Source: Paragordius varius
Lineage: Eukaryota; Animalia; Nematomorpha
NCBI GenBank assembly: GCA_964247055.1
Contig: OZ176050.1
Span: 8,432,001 to 8,496,000 of the forward strand
Length of the DNA: 64,000 bases
Reading direction: 5' to 3'
The translations under genes and the position numbers were made by a program. Every line of letters begins with the position of its first letter. The first letter of the stretch is position 1. Below are positions 13,456-53,858 of the stretch, piece by piece. The notes beneath the pieces are model-generated. The model made no database searches and was not told where the DNA came from. It saw nothing but the letters and a program-made list of their open reading frames with translations.

Positions 13456-15513
13456 ATGTCAGCTTCAAAATTTATGCAACATTTTATCAGGGGAGGTTTG
13501 GGTCAAAGCATTTGTTTATATCTTACCAAGAGTCCCAATTCGCAATTAATACGAACATTTACGAATAATGCAAGGTCTGCTATTCAACCTGGTATTAAAC
13601 GACGTAGTTTAAAGGAAATTTTATTGGCACCTGCCGGACAAGGAGGTTTTTAGTTAATATATTTCAAGCGTTTACGTTGGGTCGTGGTGCTCTTATTGGT
13701 GGATCTGCTTTAGGACTTACGGCTTTATGCTATTATGGATTAGGACTATCCAAAGAAATAGGGGCTATTGATAAAGCAATGTAAAATTATAGTTAATAAT
13801 ATTTAGCGTATGGCCTAAAATTGTTAAAGAACGAATACAAAACACATATCTTTATTTTGGTGGTAGCCTTTTATTTACAGCAGGTTCCGCATATTATGTT
13901 GCTAGAAACGCTACTTTAATGAATATGTTTGCCAGGACATCGCTTTTAGTAAAATTTAAATAATATAAATAAAAAACAATTTTTCATATTTTAACTTATG
14001 AAACAGTAAACAAAATGATCATTTATTAATTTTTATTATAGTTAATTGGTTTAACTTTTGTTGCTGTGATTGATCATTTATTAATTTTTATTATAGTCAA
14101 TTGGTTTAACTTTTGTTGCTGTGATTGCAAGTGGTGCATTATGCAGATCCATTCCATACAATTCCGAAAACTTTCTTGTTAAACACGGCTCATGGATTCT
14201 TCACAACGGTGTTTTGGGCGCAATGGTTGCCCCCATGACGGTCCTTGGTGGCCCATTAATTTTAAGAGCCGCGGTTTATACGGCTGGGATCGTTGGAGGT
14301 TTATAATTTTACTCTATATAATATACCTATAATTACTGTTAAATAAACCATAATAATTTTAGGACTCTCTATGGTTGCTGCATGCGCTCCAAGCGATAAA
14401 TTTTTGACAATGTCTGGACCGCTGGCTATTGGATTGGGAACTGTTTTTGTGGCTTCCTTGGGTAAATATTAGATAAAATACTGATAATTTAGGCTTTTTA
14501 TATTTTATTACATTTCGCTAGTATTCGCAACAATAATTGGCTTGTAGTCGAAAAACGATATTTAGTTTTGTCATGTCTCTGTATGGATAATTTATTTAAA
14601 AAGGGCGTCCTATATAAATTTTAATAATATTGGGCAAAAATTTATAGTTTATGTGATTATATTTTTTAATAATATTGGGTAAAATAATATATATATTCCA
14701 GAAACCTGTCTAGGCCTTTTCCCTTACATTATGTTTTCTAACTTTTGGTACAATAGCTACAAATTACACATAATTTTTGTTTGATTTTATATTACATATT
14801 TTCCAAAGTATTTATCATATCTTTATAGAGATTTTTATTTAATACTTGTCTTTGTTCTATGTTTATAATGGAGACCATTTGTTCATATATTATATATGTT
14901 TTATAGGCGGGATGTTTTTGCCTCCAACCACAGCATTGGGTGCTGGTCTCTATTCCATATCTGTTTATGGCGGTTTGTTACTTTTTAGCGCATTCCTGCT
15001 TTACGATACGCAAAAGATTGTTAAATTGGCCGAAAATTATCCTACTCACAAAGGCGTTACACCATTCGACCCTATAAATGCGTATGTATTACCTAAAATT
15101 ATATAACATAACGGATCTTTACTCATTTAATTATTAGATTTGTTTAGTAGTATTTTCCCAACAATGTAATCTTTAAATGTGTAGCTAAGCTTTTTAACAA
15201 AATTTTAACTTAAATTTTTTAATACGGCGATTATCTTTGTCAATATATTATGCAAGAAGGGTTAATTCAAAATTCAACCATTAAGATATCAGACGTATAT
15301 CTAAGTGATAATTATTTTTTAGTACCTGATTTTATGACTATAAAAATGTCAAAAGCACTGATGAATGGATTAATAAATGCACATACAATTCATTATGGTT
15401 GTAATTTTATTTATAATTTTTGTTACAGATCAATGGGCATATATCTGGATACACTAAATATCTTTATGAGATTAGCCATGGTATTGGCTGGTGGATCTAA
15501 CAAACGAAAATAA
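13456..15513 (+). CDS. GHITM: Growth hormone-inducible transmembrane protein (mitochondrial Bax-inhibitor-1/TMBIM5 family), 7 exons, 334 aa
   Basis: Exons 13456-13645, 13669-13780, 13807-13948, 14097-14298, 14363-14461, 14907-15081, 15429-15513 join in frame; motifs ALCYYGLG..EIGAIDKA, VWP..VKERI, AAVYTAGIVGGL, FLLYDTQK, DPINA, IYLDTLNIFMR. Confidence 0.95.
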
Positions 15514-36700: not shown

Positions 36701-37127
36701 TCATAGTTACCATTAAAACAAAACACTATAATATATTAAAATGTATACCAAAGGCCCCCAATACGTATATAAATATCCAATTTTTACTTGGTTAATAAAT
36801 TGCGTGAGAGCAACAGTTAGGAAATATAAATTGAGAAAAAATTTGAATTGATTGTACAAAACCTTAATTCTTAAACATAAAAATTTACCAATGGAATAAA
36901 TGTGAAAAAATTATATTTCTGATTATTTATGGCGTTTCCACAATACCCATTAAGATTATAACCAATATAGATAGCCCGTGGATCATAATCCTTTTTGCCA
37001 AAACATCTGCTTATATTAACAAATAATTTTAATACTTAAATGGTTTTGTACGGCTGGATTTGTCCAAAAGATGGGCTTGCTCATTAAAATTTCTCATAGA
37101 TATTTCTTCATTCTTTTTGTGCATCAT
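21701..37127 (-). CDS. ATP9: P4-ATPase phospholipid flippase, class II (ATP9-like), multi-exon
   Basis: Exons encode [37 protein letters not shown] (phosphorylation site, about 33870), [49 protein letters not shown] and C-terminal [12 protein letters not shown]; probable ATG at 37127 (or 37124). Not every internal junction was resolved. Confidence 0.93.
22272..22619. mobile_element. MITE family D (TACCATTT terminus, 21-bp subterminal repeats) in an ATP9 intron
   Basis: CAATTCAAATTCACCCTTGAA-like 21-bp units at the left, inverted at the right, ending GTAAATGGTA|TA; homologous to 61277-61586; left end degenerate. Confidence 0.75.
24186..24272 (-). mobile_element. Degenerate copy of the tRNA-derived SINE
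   Basis: Minus strand AAACTGTACAATTTTTCCATCATTTGGCTGTCAGCCC aligns with the SINE body GAAACTATACAATTTTTTCATCATCAATGTCAGCCC at about 45380 and 42450. Confidence 0.5.
24734..24791. repeat. (TA)n microsatellite
   Basis: About 29 perfect TA units. Confidence 0.95.
25006..28935 (-). mobile_element. Ty3/Gypsy LTR retrotransposon, defective, in an ATP9 intron
   Basis: Two 337-bp LTRs (25006-25342, 28599-28935; 3 mismatches seen), 5-bp TSD ATTAA, PBS TGGCGACGAG next to the 5' LTR, polypurine tract AAAGATGGGAGA before the 3' LTR, domain order PR-RT-RNaseH-IN. Confidence 0.96.
25355..28433 (-). pseudogene. Gypsy gag-knuckle/pol, disrupted
   Basis: [14 protein letters not shown] knuckle, FDTGAD protease, YLDD RT, TDAS..DHKPL RNase H, HTGHPG..CDSC zinc finger, HIDIAGP/SDNA/NGLVER integrase; one TGA at 27940-27942 and a -1 frameshift at about 25950; most of gag is missing. 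Confidence 0.93.
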
Positions 37128-37163: not shown

Positions 37164-40100
37164 ATGGAATTTTTGTATGAGTTGCCTACCCTGATTGGTA
37201 TCCTGAAAAAACAGTATCAAAAAATTATTTATGTTAGTTATTCCGATTTTCAAGTTTTTGAAATCGATACCGACGGAAAGTACGTTAGTCAAATATTGGA
37301 TTCCACAGTTCCCATAGTAAAACAAGATAATGAAAATGATAAGTTTTTATACGAAAAAGAGTGTGATTTTATTAACCAAAATATCACCGAAATATTCAAA
37401 ATTAAAGTTTAATAAAAAAATAATATCAGGTTAATGGTATGTCTAAAAGTTCCAGAAAGAGCGTTCATCAATGTGTGCGCAAATTATACCTGAACTTAAG
37501 AAGTGCCACTATGGATATTGACGATGAAAAGTACATTATGATCTATCATAAGGGTATAAATGGATTATTATTTTAGATAATGTAAATATTGTTCCAAATG
37601 ATCCAAAAGATAATAGGTCTGTTCCCAAGTATCTTCGTTTTATTCTTTACAAAGAAGGCATAGATACTCACATGGCTATAATGAAAATGGCACGTATACT
37701 TGGAATTAAGCAATCTAGATTTTCTTTTGCCGGTAATATTTAATAATTTTTATTATAAATTCTTTAGTTTTTTGCACTCTATATATTTTTATTGAACTGA
37801 ATGCCCTTGGGAAATGTTATTCGCCGACGACCTCGTGATAACGACACGATCATGGGATCAAATGATAAATACATATACCAAGTGGAAGAAATGCCTTGAA
37901 CAATATGGAATGATTATAAACGCCACAAAAACAAATATAATGATAACGGGTAAAAGTGAAACACCCAGATACCCCTGTTCCATTTGCAGTAAGGAAGTAC
38001 GTTCAAATTCCATTAAATGCATATCATGTCAAATGTGGGTACACAAAAAGTGCTCTAAAATAAAAGACAAATTAACAAATGTAATAAATTTTAAATGTTT
38101 AAATTGCTTAGACCCAAGCAATAATAATTTTAATCGACCAAAGCTACTTAACATTGATGGACATGACATCGAATTGGCAGACTCTTTTGTATACCTAGGA
38201 GATGTCATATCATTTTAGGGAAGCCCACAAAAGGCTATCAAAAGAAGAATACAACAAGGTTGGATAAAATATAATCAGCTAAAATTTTTCCAAAAACAAA
38301 AATGTTAACAATCGTAATAAATGGTATCTTTACAAGGTAGGAATAAGACCTGCTCTTACCTATGGTTCTAAAACCTGGGCATTAAACAAAACAAATCAAA
38401 TAAAACTCCTAACCAGTGAGAACCGAATACTCAAAAGCTGCTTTCGCATACCAGAATTACCAATTTTCATTAAAAAAAACCGATAAAATCGATTATATAA
38501 TTCAAACTAACAGATTGCGTCTATACGGTCATACTTAGAGAAGAGACGCCACCCATCCGTGAAAACATTAAAGTTGATGGCAATAGAAGAAAGGGACGAC
38601 CACTCTTTTCTTATAATGATAATATAAAAATGGACTTGAATCAACGTAGCCTTTCCACAGAACAATGTAAAGATCGTAATTTATGGAGGAAACTACTTCG
38701 TGGATACAAAACTCCGAATATGGAGTCCTAAAATTATCCATCTATTCATTAATTATTGGAGTTAGGTTTTGGATTGTTTAAAATAGAATAATAATTTGCC
38801 TGACCGCTTTCAAAGGCATTCATTTAGAATTTCGAATATATATTGTAAATTAAAAAACAAAATTTACCAATCAAATAGGTTTTATTAGACCCAATCAATG
38901 CATTTATTTTTTCAATCAGCCCTGTAAATGGTGCCTTCTGTTGATAAAAGAGTTATACTTCATGATTATTGGAGCGAATTATTATGTATATAATCTTGTG
39001 TCTAACTAATGATTCTTTAGGTCATTTTAAAACTGGACACCGCGTTAAAGTTGCAATAGAACTCCGTTGGCCAATTTTTCATTTATTCTTCGATTGAAAG
39101 ATACAATATTTTTATTTTAACTGATTATTTGATATCGATTGCCTATTGTGTATTGTCCTTATATAATTTTGCCATTTTTTAAATTATAAATATATAAAAA
39201 ATATATTTTTTTTTATATATTTAAGGTACCAAGGATAAGCGTGCCATATCAACCCAAAATGTTTGCGTTTTTAAAATAGCTGCGGAACAGCTAAATTCAT
39301 TAATCAACAATTATAAAAATAATTATAACATTCATAAAAACTCTTCCGAATCGGGACCTAATACAAATTCCCCAAATCACGAAACTGATGTTTTGTCAAA
39401 TGATAATGAAAGTAATTTATATTGTGACGATGTAATGCTTAACCGTGAGAACACAGAAATTATGACTGAAGAGAGTATTGAAATGGAAAATGGCGATTTA
39501 TCAAACAGTACTGTTTTAGAGGAGGAATCATTTCATGGCAAAGGATTTTTTAAAGTTGGACACTTTAAGTATGACACTAAGCCTTTGAGTTTGGGGGAGT
39601 TGAATGGGAATCATTTTCGCATCATAATTAGGTTTCGATACATAATCATTATATACTCTTAAAAATATATCAGTTTATGATTACATTATACATATATATT
39701 TTGTAAGTTTTTATACGACAAAATATTTTTTTATTTTCCTTTTTGTTATCTATGCCTAATTTATAATTTAGAAATATGCAATTTTTCGAAGCGCAACCGC
39801 AATCACATGACTGTTCACATTGTAATAATACTCTCAATTGTGATTGTATCAAGAAAGCAGTAAAAGCAACGCTAGAAAATTCGGTTAACACTATAAAGTG
39901 CTTGGGATTCGTTAATTATTTCGGTACTCAACGGTTTGGGATAAATAATGACACGTGTATAACTGGCAAATACCTCATAAAAGGGGATTATGGTCAAGCT
40001 CTGGCCACAATCCTTGATCCAAATAAACCAAAACTCATACCGGAATTAAGGCATTACCTGCTACAAAACGTATCCTGGTACAATCAACTTAAAGCAAAAC

Positions 40101-52722: not shown

Positions 52723-53519
52723 ATGCAAATCGCATGGAAAACGTTTAATCTAGTCTGTGTGGATTATATTGATGGTATTGTAATAATTATTTCAAGGGGA
52801 TTTGTTTTCAAAACTATTGGCTATATCAAGCTTAATTCCTATATTTATTATATTCGGATCAATTACTTTGATATTTTTTAGAAGATATATGCATACAGTA
52901 AACATATTTTTATTTAAAGATTACATTTTTTATTGGAGTTCTTTTAAATACAGCTATTGGATATTCCATAAAAAAGTTTATAAAATCTCCGAGACCAATT
53001 CGAGGTTTACTAAATTTTATATAAAGATAACCAAATTGTATTATCCTATGGCATGCCGTCAAGTCATGCTCAATTTATTTGGTTTTTTATTGTTTACATG
53101 TACTTATTTTTAAAAAATAAGTAAACTTTGATATTTATTTAGGAATATATCGAATTATATTGTTGATTTGGAGGGTCATTATTTTAAAAAAGTTACCGAA
53201 TTCTTGTTTCCATTTGCTCTAACGATTATGGCAATATTAGTTAGCTTTAGTAGGTACTAACAATTTAATTTTATAGAATTTATTTATTGTATCACACAAC
53301 ACCTCAAGTTATTATAGGAAGCATACTCGGGGTTATATTTGGGTTCGCTTGGTACCAAATATATGATCACACAAAGCATTACTACAAAAAAATTGTTAAG
53401 CAGTAATATATATAGATAATTTTAGCCATGTCTGTCAAACCTTTATGATTAAGGATTGCACTGATATTCCGAACTTACTCATGTATGAACACAAAAAGTT
53501 ACAAAAGTTATCCAGTTAA
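52723..53519 (+). CDS. DOLPP1: Dolichyl-diphosphatase 1 (PAP2 family), 7 exons, 220 aa
   Basis: Exons 52723-52774, 52797-52897, 52920-53004, 53027-53120, 53143-53253, 53277-53402, 53426-53519 give a stop-free 663-nt frame with KKFIKSPRP, YGMPSSHAQFIWFF, SRIYLLYHT..QV..G and FMIKD..DIPNLL. Confidence 0.93.
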
Positions 53520-53858
53520 TCTTTGGCATCCATCCAATTCCATTTTAATAAATGACTTCATAGTATAATCGTCTATATTTTCTATTTCCTGTACAGCTTT
53601 ATCGTACCCAACTGCTTTACAATAATCCATTAGTTCATTTGTATATTTTATCCAAACACATTGTTGGCATCCTTGTCCACAACACATGGTGGGTATAATT
53701 GGTGGTTTAATATCATTATCCATCATATTGTTTATACTATCATAATAAAATTTGGGTGCGCTGGGTAGTTCTGGAATCCCTTTATTAGCATCTTGCGAAT
53801 ATTTCACATAGATTGGTCGAACCAGCTTCGATAACCTTGTTAAATTACATACATTCAT
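53508..53858 (-). CDS. OXLD1: Oxidoreductase-like domain-containing protein 1, single exon, 116 aa
   Basis: PPIIPTMCCGQGCQQCVWIKY..EL motif and C-terminal D..MKSFIKMEL; basic presequence-like N-terminus. Confidence 0.85.
   Translation of the reverse strand: MNVCNLTRLSKLVRPIYVKYSQDANKGIPELPSAPKFYYDSINNMMDNDIKPPIIPTMCCGQGCQQCVWIKYTNELMDYCKAVGYDKAVQEIENIDDYTMKSFIKMELDGCQRLTG

Follow-up and report, generated by a model that had tools for sequence, protein, structure and literature searches.

The window analysed here is a 64,000-nt stretch of DNA from the hairworm Paragordius varius, and between positions 52723 and 53519 of its plus strand lies what is almost certainly, judging from the genomic sequence, a real gene for a dolichyldiphosphatase (DOLPP1) interrupted by six minimal introns. 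When the gene model was recomputed from its coordinates, it comprised an ATG start, seven exons and six GT..AG introns. The exons measure 52, 101, 85, 94, 111, 126 and 94 nt, giving 663 nt in total, that is, 220 codons followed by TAA, and no in-frame stop was found within the exons or among the five codons that are split by introns. The lengths of introns 1 to 6 are 22, 22, 22, 22, 23 and 23 nt and their phases 1, 0, 1, 2, 2 and 2; each of the six starts with GT and ends with AG, and their GC content (13-18%) is lower than that of the exons (25-35%). Intron 1 (52775-52796) has a GC fraction of 0.18 and shifts the frame if retained, intron 2 occupies 52898-52919, and introns 3 (53005-53026), 4 (53121-53142) and 6 (53403-53425) each carry an in-frame stop, while intron 5 (53254-53276) splits the arginine codon of the third catalytic motif. 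GT and AG ends, together with restoration of the frame upon removal, assign all six to the U2-type GT-AG introns as far as splicing can be predicted.

The initial annotation had proposed six introns of 22-23 nt at these positions and a spliced product of 220 residues with the three PAP2 catalytic motifs. Our recomputation agreed exactly with the former, all introns being GT..AG, and both the frame and the motifs of the latter were verified. The chimeric 103-aa frame that it had pointed out in the list of open reading frames (ORFs) was also found, at 52802-53113, in frame with exon 2 only. Its description of the gene as hidden from ORF calling is correct in that the ORF list gives nothing but fragments of it, but the same would be true of any gene that contains introns. 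Downstream of the stop codon, an AATAAA at 53547-53552 of the plus strand, 28 nt past the stop, is a candidate polyadenylation signal. We also observed that a minus-strand ORF at 53508-53858, encoding a 116-aa Oxidoreductase-like (PF09791) protein, is convergent with DOLPP1. The two coding sequences overlap by 12 nt at their 3′ ends (53508-53519), and therefore the 3′-UTRs of both genes must be fully antisense to each other.

Homology searches were run on single exons; the total length and the split codons were worked out by calculation. A six-frame search of the whole genome with the Pfam PAP2 model (PF01569) gave 31.7 bits at 53026-53367, against a gathering cut-off of 27.2, and exons 4 and 6 matched the same model singly with about 17 bits each (E of about 0.004). 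When exon 6 was compared with 1.84 billion representative sequences, just two matches were obtained at E<=0.001, one of them usable as a seed; the best match was a 138-aa protein named dolichyldiphosphatase by JGI, and this seed led to a 236-aa dolichyldiphosphatase of Protomyces. The profile seeded from that best match gathered 1589 relatives. Among the best 120 of these, the names were dolichyldiphosphatase, DOLPP1, CAX4-related or generic PAP2, and all the named ones were fungal. A DOLPP1 hidden Markov model (HMM) was made from 114 of the relatives, so that the orthologues compared were fungal.

Results showed that exons 2 to 7 match this 114-member HMM at positions 22-51, 55-80, 86-108, 130-140, 147-180 and 194-205, in strictly ascending order. 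Exon 2 (52797-52897) scored 5.6 bits and was also matched by tblastn to residues 27-53 of the Protomyces protein. Exon 3 (52920-53004) scored 8.6 bits and contains the first PAP2 motif, K-x6-RP, at 52971-52997. In a six-frame HMM search of the window and the six other PAP2 loci of the genome, exons 3 and 2 ranked third and fifth among the window's pieces. The strongest matches were those of exon 4 (53027-53120; 33.8-34.8 bits, Pfam PAP2 E 0.0037), which carries the second motif, PSSH, at 53056-53067, and of exon 6 (53277-53402; profile columns 146-180, 31.7-35.1 bits), which holds the remainder of the third motif, SR-x5-H-x3-Q, spanning 53249-53307. The exons that flank intron 2 meet at profile columns 53 and 54 with zero gap, and the last column of exon 5, the split arginine and the first column of exon 6 fall on 145, 146 and 147, so that junctions 2/3 and 5/6 are both gapless against the HMM. 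Matches of exon 5 (53143-53253), which encodes a variable loop and then the helix that precedes motif 3, and of exon 7 (53426-53519, with the TAA at 53517-53519) were weak and non-significant, though at the right places in the HMM; in exon 7, F-x-I-K-D aligns with the fungal F-L-x-R-D. Exon 1 (52723-52774), which starts with ATG and comprises 17 codons plus 1 base, had no significant match to this profile of fungal members only, and its N-terminal L..V.Y pattern is as in the 236-aa Protomyces protein.

All three PAP2 motifs, whose generic forms are K-x6-RP, PSGH and SR-x5-H-x3-D, are thus present, as K-x6-RP, PSSH and SR-x5-H-x3-Q. The substitutions of S for G and Q for D are found as well in both the 138-aa JGI and the 236-aa Protomyces dolichyldiphosphatases, and the 9 residues between RP and YGMPSSH equal the spacing in the Protomyces enzyme. 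Seven PAP2 loci were found in the genome. Because the Pfam model covers PAP2 proteins in general and the comparison set is fungal, we considered whether the gene might belong to a different PAP2 subfamily, for instance that of the lipid phosphate phosphatases or of the PPAPDC-type enzymes. This is scarcely credible: the DOLPP1-specific HMM gives twice the generic PAP2 bits on exons 4 and 6 (34-35 versus 17) and reaches exons 2 and 3, which are non-catalytic, none of the six other PAP2 loci exceeds 14 bits with it, and PSSH and H-x3-Q are of the DOLPP1 type. A search of PDB sequences with the Protomyces dolichyldiphosphatase found no solved DOLPP1, and an ESM Atlas search with exon 6 returned generic PAP2 clusters only. 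Since the six other PAP2 loci score far lower, we conclude from these sequence comparisons that the locus corresponds to the DOLPP1/Cwh8 orthologue, being the best DOLPP1-like locus of the genome. In agreement with the earlier claim of a complete DOLPP1, HMM colinearity and the motifs point in the same direction as the low scores of the remaining loci.

With 220 residues, the predicted protein is similar in length to DOLPP1 and yeast Cwh8 (Cax4), which have about 220-240 aa; the three motifs in their DOLPP1-typical form are common to both, and exons 2 to 7 follow the order of the 114-member profile, exons 5 and 7 with weak matches. In comparison with the fungal dolichyldiphosphatases, the hairworm exons 1, 5 and 7 are strongly divergent, and no functional difference is apparent. 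By homology, the product would be a PAP2 membrane enzyme that cleaves the terminal phosphate off dolichyl diphosphate in the endoplasmic reticulum, and this dephosphorylation would allow the lipid carrier to be recycled for N-glycosylation.

The junctions were then examined individually. For each of the DOLPP1 introns, we enumerated all GT..AG pairs within ±40 nt that leave both flanking frames open. In-frame alternatives exist for introns 1 (40 and 88 nt), 4 (43, 61 and 82 nt), 5 and 6 (59 nt each). Every alternative pair deletes 6-22 residues or, in one case, needs an intron of 16 nt, by which the beginning of exon 3 is destroyed. These alternatives, and the fact that exons 1, 5 and 7 are without strong homology support, leave some room for a real gene in which at least one junction differs from the model, for example with a 40-nt intron 1 at 52757-52796, with other bounds of exons 1, 5 or 7, or with alternative splicing. 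We regard this as unlikely, as several of the residues deleted by the alternatives fall in conserved profile columns, colinearity worsens, and the proposed lengths sit exactly on the local mode of 22-23 nt.

Unfiltered ORF-bridging and ORF-chaining scans showed no advantage of GT-AG, control dinucleotide pairs giving equally many open chains; a usable signal emerged once the candidates were filtered by the AT-richness of their interior and by the GC of their flanks. Because control dinucleotides thread frames as often as GT-AG does, an open frame alone is no proof of a gene in AT-rich DNA, and support for the gene model must therefore come from homology. In the case of DOLPP1, this support, which is drawn from profile matches, resides in four exons (2, 3, 4 and 6) plus their colinearity. 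As for internal splicing signals, branch-point-like sequences were seen in intron 5 (TACTAAC) and intron 3 (TACTAAA), the other DOLPP1 introns having only A-rich, TAAT-like stretches.

A different reading of the same interruptions is that the locus is a decaying pseudogene, its 22-23-nt interruptions being inserted or junk sequence that breaks the frame and is never removed. The gene model comes from genomic sequence and the genome is transposon-rich, with reverse-transcriptase ORFs in the window itself. Nevertheless, decay is highly improbable as an explanation of six interruptions out of six that are GT..AG and markedly more AT-rich than their flanks, each of which, when removed, restores the frame exactly with an offset of zero to two residues from the family profile. 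Moreover, the catalytic motifs are all intact, this is the sole DOLPP1-like locus among the PAP2 loci of the genome, and similar segments interrupt other housekeeping genes. Taking these arguments together, we put at nearly nine in ten the probability that the locus is a single intact dolichyldiphosphatase orthologue of the hairworm nuclear genome whose six 22-23-nt spliceosomal introns belong to a discrete minimal class.

The initial annotation had also deduced a hard minimum of intron length near 22 nt. The length distribution of candidate introns was analysed in 264 kb from one region, consisting of the 64-kb window and the next 200 kb, with filters that required GT..AG ends, a very AT-rich interior, flanks with a GC content of 22% or more, and 25 or more open codons on either side; three control dinucleotide pairs were treated in the same way. 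At 22 nt there were 13 GT-AG candidates against a control mean of 2.7, and the same two values were obtained at 23 nt. The corresponding values were 3 against 3.0 at 24 nt and 9 against 2.7 at 25 nt. In this filtered 264-kb scan, no GT-AG excess over the controls was detected at 17-21 nt, nor at 24 nt. In four of six filter settings, the stricter ones, candidates were again in excess at 22-23 nt and not at 21 nt or below; the excess faded in the two loosest. Among the 25-nt candidates, three of nine are copies of one repeat, which inflates that class. These near-identical copies, at 159091-159115, 178362-178386 and 199957-199981 counted from the first base of the window, have the same flanks and probably represent an intron carried by a repeated element.

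The candidates share splice signals consisting only of GT[A/T] at the 5′ end and [A/T]AG at the 3′ end, and no branch-point consensus emerged among the 42 tiny-intron candidates. At 85089-85415, the scan also recovered a group of three tiny introns (26, 22 and 23 nt). The proposal of a hard minimum is in line with these data, the GT-AG excess over the 264 kb starting sharply at 22 nt in a small sample of sequence-only candidates over a background of about 3 per length. A floor of 22 nt is thus supported by the scan, with the reserve due to a small sample, and a depletion of lengths divisible by three among the tiny introns is suggested by an equally small one.

Tiny introns were found in other genes as well. 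In GHITM, introns at 13646-13668 (23 nt) and 13781-13806 (26 nt) are followed by introns of 148, 64 and 445 nt; the identity of this gene is established at the family level, three exon pieces matching Pfam Bax1-I colinearly. On the minus strand, ATP9 has introns at 37010-37035 (26 or 29 nt), 36863-36888 (26 nt) and 36726-36748 (23 nt), and then one of about 840 nt. The first of these (37007-37035 in its longer form) ends in a NAGNAG-type acceptor (aag|cag), and its 26- and 29-nt forms are both in frame. An HSP70 gene on contig 4 has a 28-nt intron, then a gap of about 60 nt to the next exon match, and another HSP70 gene, on contig 7, shows no tiny introns among 12 inter-exon gaps of 58-680 nt. 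The exact junctions of the tiny introns in GHITM, ATP9 and HSP70 were placed partly by reference to the human proteins.

Counted by frame and homology, the four genes together contain 12 tiny introns, four of 22 nt, four of 23 nt, three of 26 nt and one of 28 nt. None of these 12 lengths is divisible by three, and retention leads to a premature stop in all 12, the stop lying inside the intron in 8 cases. The predicted tiny introns cluster by gene, DOLPP1 being the extreme with six of six. Several observations concern the longer introns of the window. The 148-nt intron of GHITM (13949-14096) carries a second, tandem copy of the acceptor together with the initial 30-odd bases of the exon that follows, and only the second of the duplicated acceptors keeps the frame (exon start 14097). 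An ORF with reverse-transcriptase and PHD-finger domains (37796-38215) is located within a PUS7 intron of about 1.5 kb, and a Gypsy-like element at 25.3-28.5 kb lies within an ATP9 intron. Long introns in the window are partly transposon insertions.

The genome in which these introns reside was characterized through its assembly and its mitochondrion. The assembly consists of 44 contigs that add up to 110.6 Mb, and the contig that carries the window is 15.2 Mb long. TAA is used as a stop codon, and the 18S gene is conventional, with 1809 nt. The mitochondrial genome is contig 44 (15,693 bp), which has a conserved COX1, reads TGA as a sense codon (Trp) and carries tRNAs of mitochondrial type. 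Its coding regions hold dozens of inverted repeats that are 100% perfect and reach 2x208 nt, and perfect mitochondrial inverted repeats are known to reach an exceptional scale in Nematomorpha (PMC6649704). A stop-free ATP6 piece of 135 aa had as its top five matches Gordionus sp., Gordionus wolterstorffii, Parachordodes, Chordodes and Gordius, with 53-59% identity (E 1e-29 to 1e-34); outside hairworms, the best named matches were arthropods, with at most 49% identity. The mitochondrial palindromes and ATP6 thus place the genome in Nematomorpha, at a rather large distance from the hairworms with public mitochondrial proteins. Although tiny introns and a GC content of 28% might suggest a ciliate, a nucleomorph, a myxozoan or a dicyemid, these origins were rejected in view of the 110.6-Mb assembly with its 15-Mb contig, the TAA stop, the conventional 18S gene and a bilaterian-type mitochondrial genome with hairworm palindromes and a hairworm-like ATP6. 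As a separate observation, the 2x208-nt palindromes exceed the hairworm maximum of 2x142 nt given in PMC6649704, and contig 44 also carries hairpin units of 72 nt arranged in tandem (palindrome and hairpin sites at L016 5104-5519, L016 6745-7451 and L017 5341-5632). The long palindromes and the hairpin array could be real or an artefact of long-read assembly. Published hairworm assemblies have 200-300 Mb, so that 110.6 Mb is about half, and the species may represent a lineage with a compact genome where the shrinkage of introns has advanced the most.

We next compared the hairworm introns with other systems of tiny introns. Paramecium introns are about 25 nt long and those of Stentor 15-16 nt. 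Among the tiny introns of ciliates, Jaillon and colleagues are reported to have found, in 2008, that lengths that are multiples of three are under-represented. As in ciliates, the hairworm lengths lie near a physical floor, none of the 12 is a multiple of three, and retention results in a premature stop. The avoidance of such lengths in Paramecium finds a parallel, in a small sample, in the 264-kb scan, where GT-AG pairs exceed the controls at 23 and 25 nt but not at 24 nt. Unlike in ciliates, the organism is an animal with the standard genetic code, and the floor is at 22 nt rather than at 15-20.

In animals, a comparison of 51 genomes (PMC13644364, Mol Biol Evol, September 2026) reports introns shorter than 30 bp only in myxobolid Myxozoa and Dicyema. 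According to the same paper, the median intron is 22 bp in Thelohanellus and Myxobolus rasmusseni and 27 bp in Henneguya, and Dicyema japonicum introns are similarly short. The hairworm shares with these lineages GT-AG introns of 22-23 nt, signals reduced to GT[A/T] and AG, clustering of tiny introns in the same genes, a parasitic way of life and an AT-rich genome. The combination that defines the myxobolid and Dicyema class, introns below 30 nt in conserved genes with reduced splice motifs, was found here for the 12 introns of the four genes. In contrast to myxobolids and Dicyema, the lineage is Nematomorpha, an ecdysozoan phylum. Also, whereas medians of 22-27 bp make tiny introns the genome-wide norm in myxobolids, in the hairworm they are one class beside introns of 60-800+ nt, and such a norm does not extend to GHITM and ATP9, which have introns of 64, 148, 445 and about 840 nt. 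DOLPP1 is among the cleanest cases of introns below 30 nt in an ecdysozoan phylum, because six of its six introns are 22-23 nt long. In the literature that we searched, no report of introns below 30 nt in a third animal lineage was found.

These results are consistent with a mechanism in which the primary DOLPP1 transcript would have to lose six GT-AG introns of 22-23 nt to acquire an open frame. The introns would belong to a minimal class with a floor of 22 nt, modes at 22-23 nt, reduced GT[A/T]...[A/T]AG signals and a very high A+T content, which would coexist with ordinary introns of 60-800+ nt and tend to cluster in particular genes. As none of the six lengths in DOLPP1 is divisible by three, an intron that is retained would always give a premature stop, and this outcome would fit selection through translation-coupled surveillance.

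The initial annotation had further proposed that standard annotation would score genes of this kind as missing and may thereby inflate the apparent gene loss of the lineage, a proposal that bears on how much of the loss reported for hairworms is real. PMC11603191 and PMC12302877 cite hairworms, with reference to Cunha et al. 2023, for massive ('rampant') loss of universal genes, and a BUSCO value of 71.6% is given for Gordionus montsenyensis in a preprint (bioRxiv 10.1101/2023.06.26.546503). The two hairworm genome preprints that we searched report BUSCO in genome mode and never mention introns. An effect of annotation on gene counts is possible, because in myxozoans BUSCO in protein mode recovered 26 genes that were missed by genome mode (PMC11557904). 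A broader proposition can be formulated, which in our judgement has an even chance of being right. It holds that hairworms are the third independent animal lineage with introns below 30 nt; that these form a discrete class beside normal introns, with a hard floor of 22 nt equal to the myxobolid median, avoidance of multiples of three and a concentration in genes such as DOLPP1, which has six at the floor; and that, if this class is handled wrongly by gene finders and aligners, the reported loss is in part an annotation artefact.

DOLPP1 itself is an ordinary housekeeping gene. That unrelated animals have the value of 22 nt in common points to a physical limit which their spliceosomes share, and a genome in which minimal introns occur side by side with ordinary ones offers a natural system in which to study what decides which introns shrink. 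If aligners and gene predictors whose minimum intron is set near or above 20-40 nt break up genes of this kind, estimates of gene loss in hairworms would need to be re-checked.
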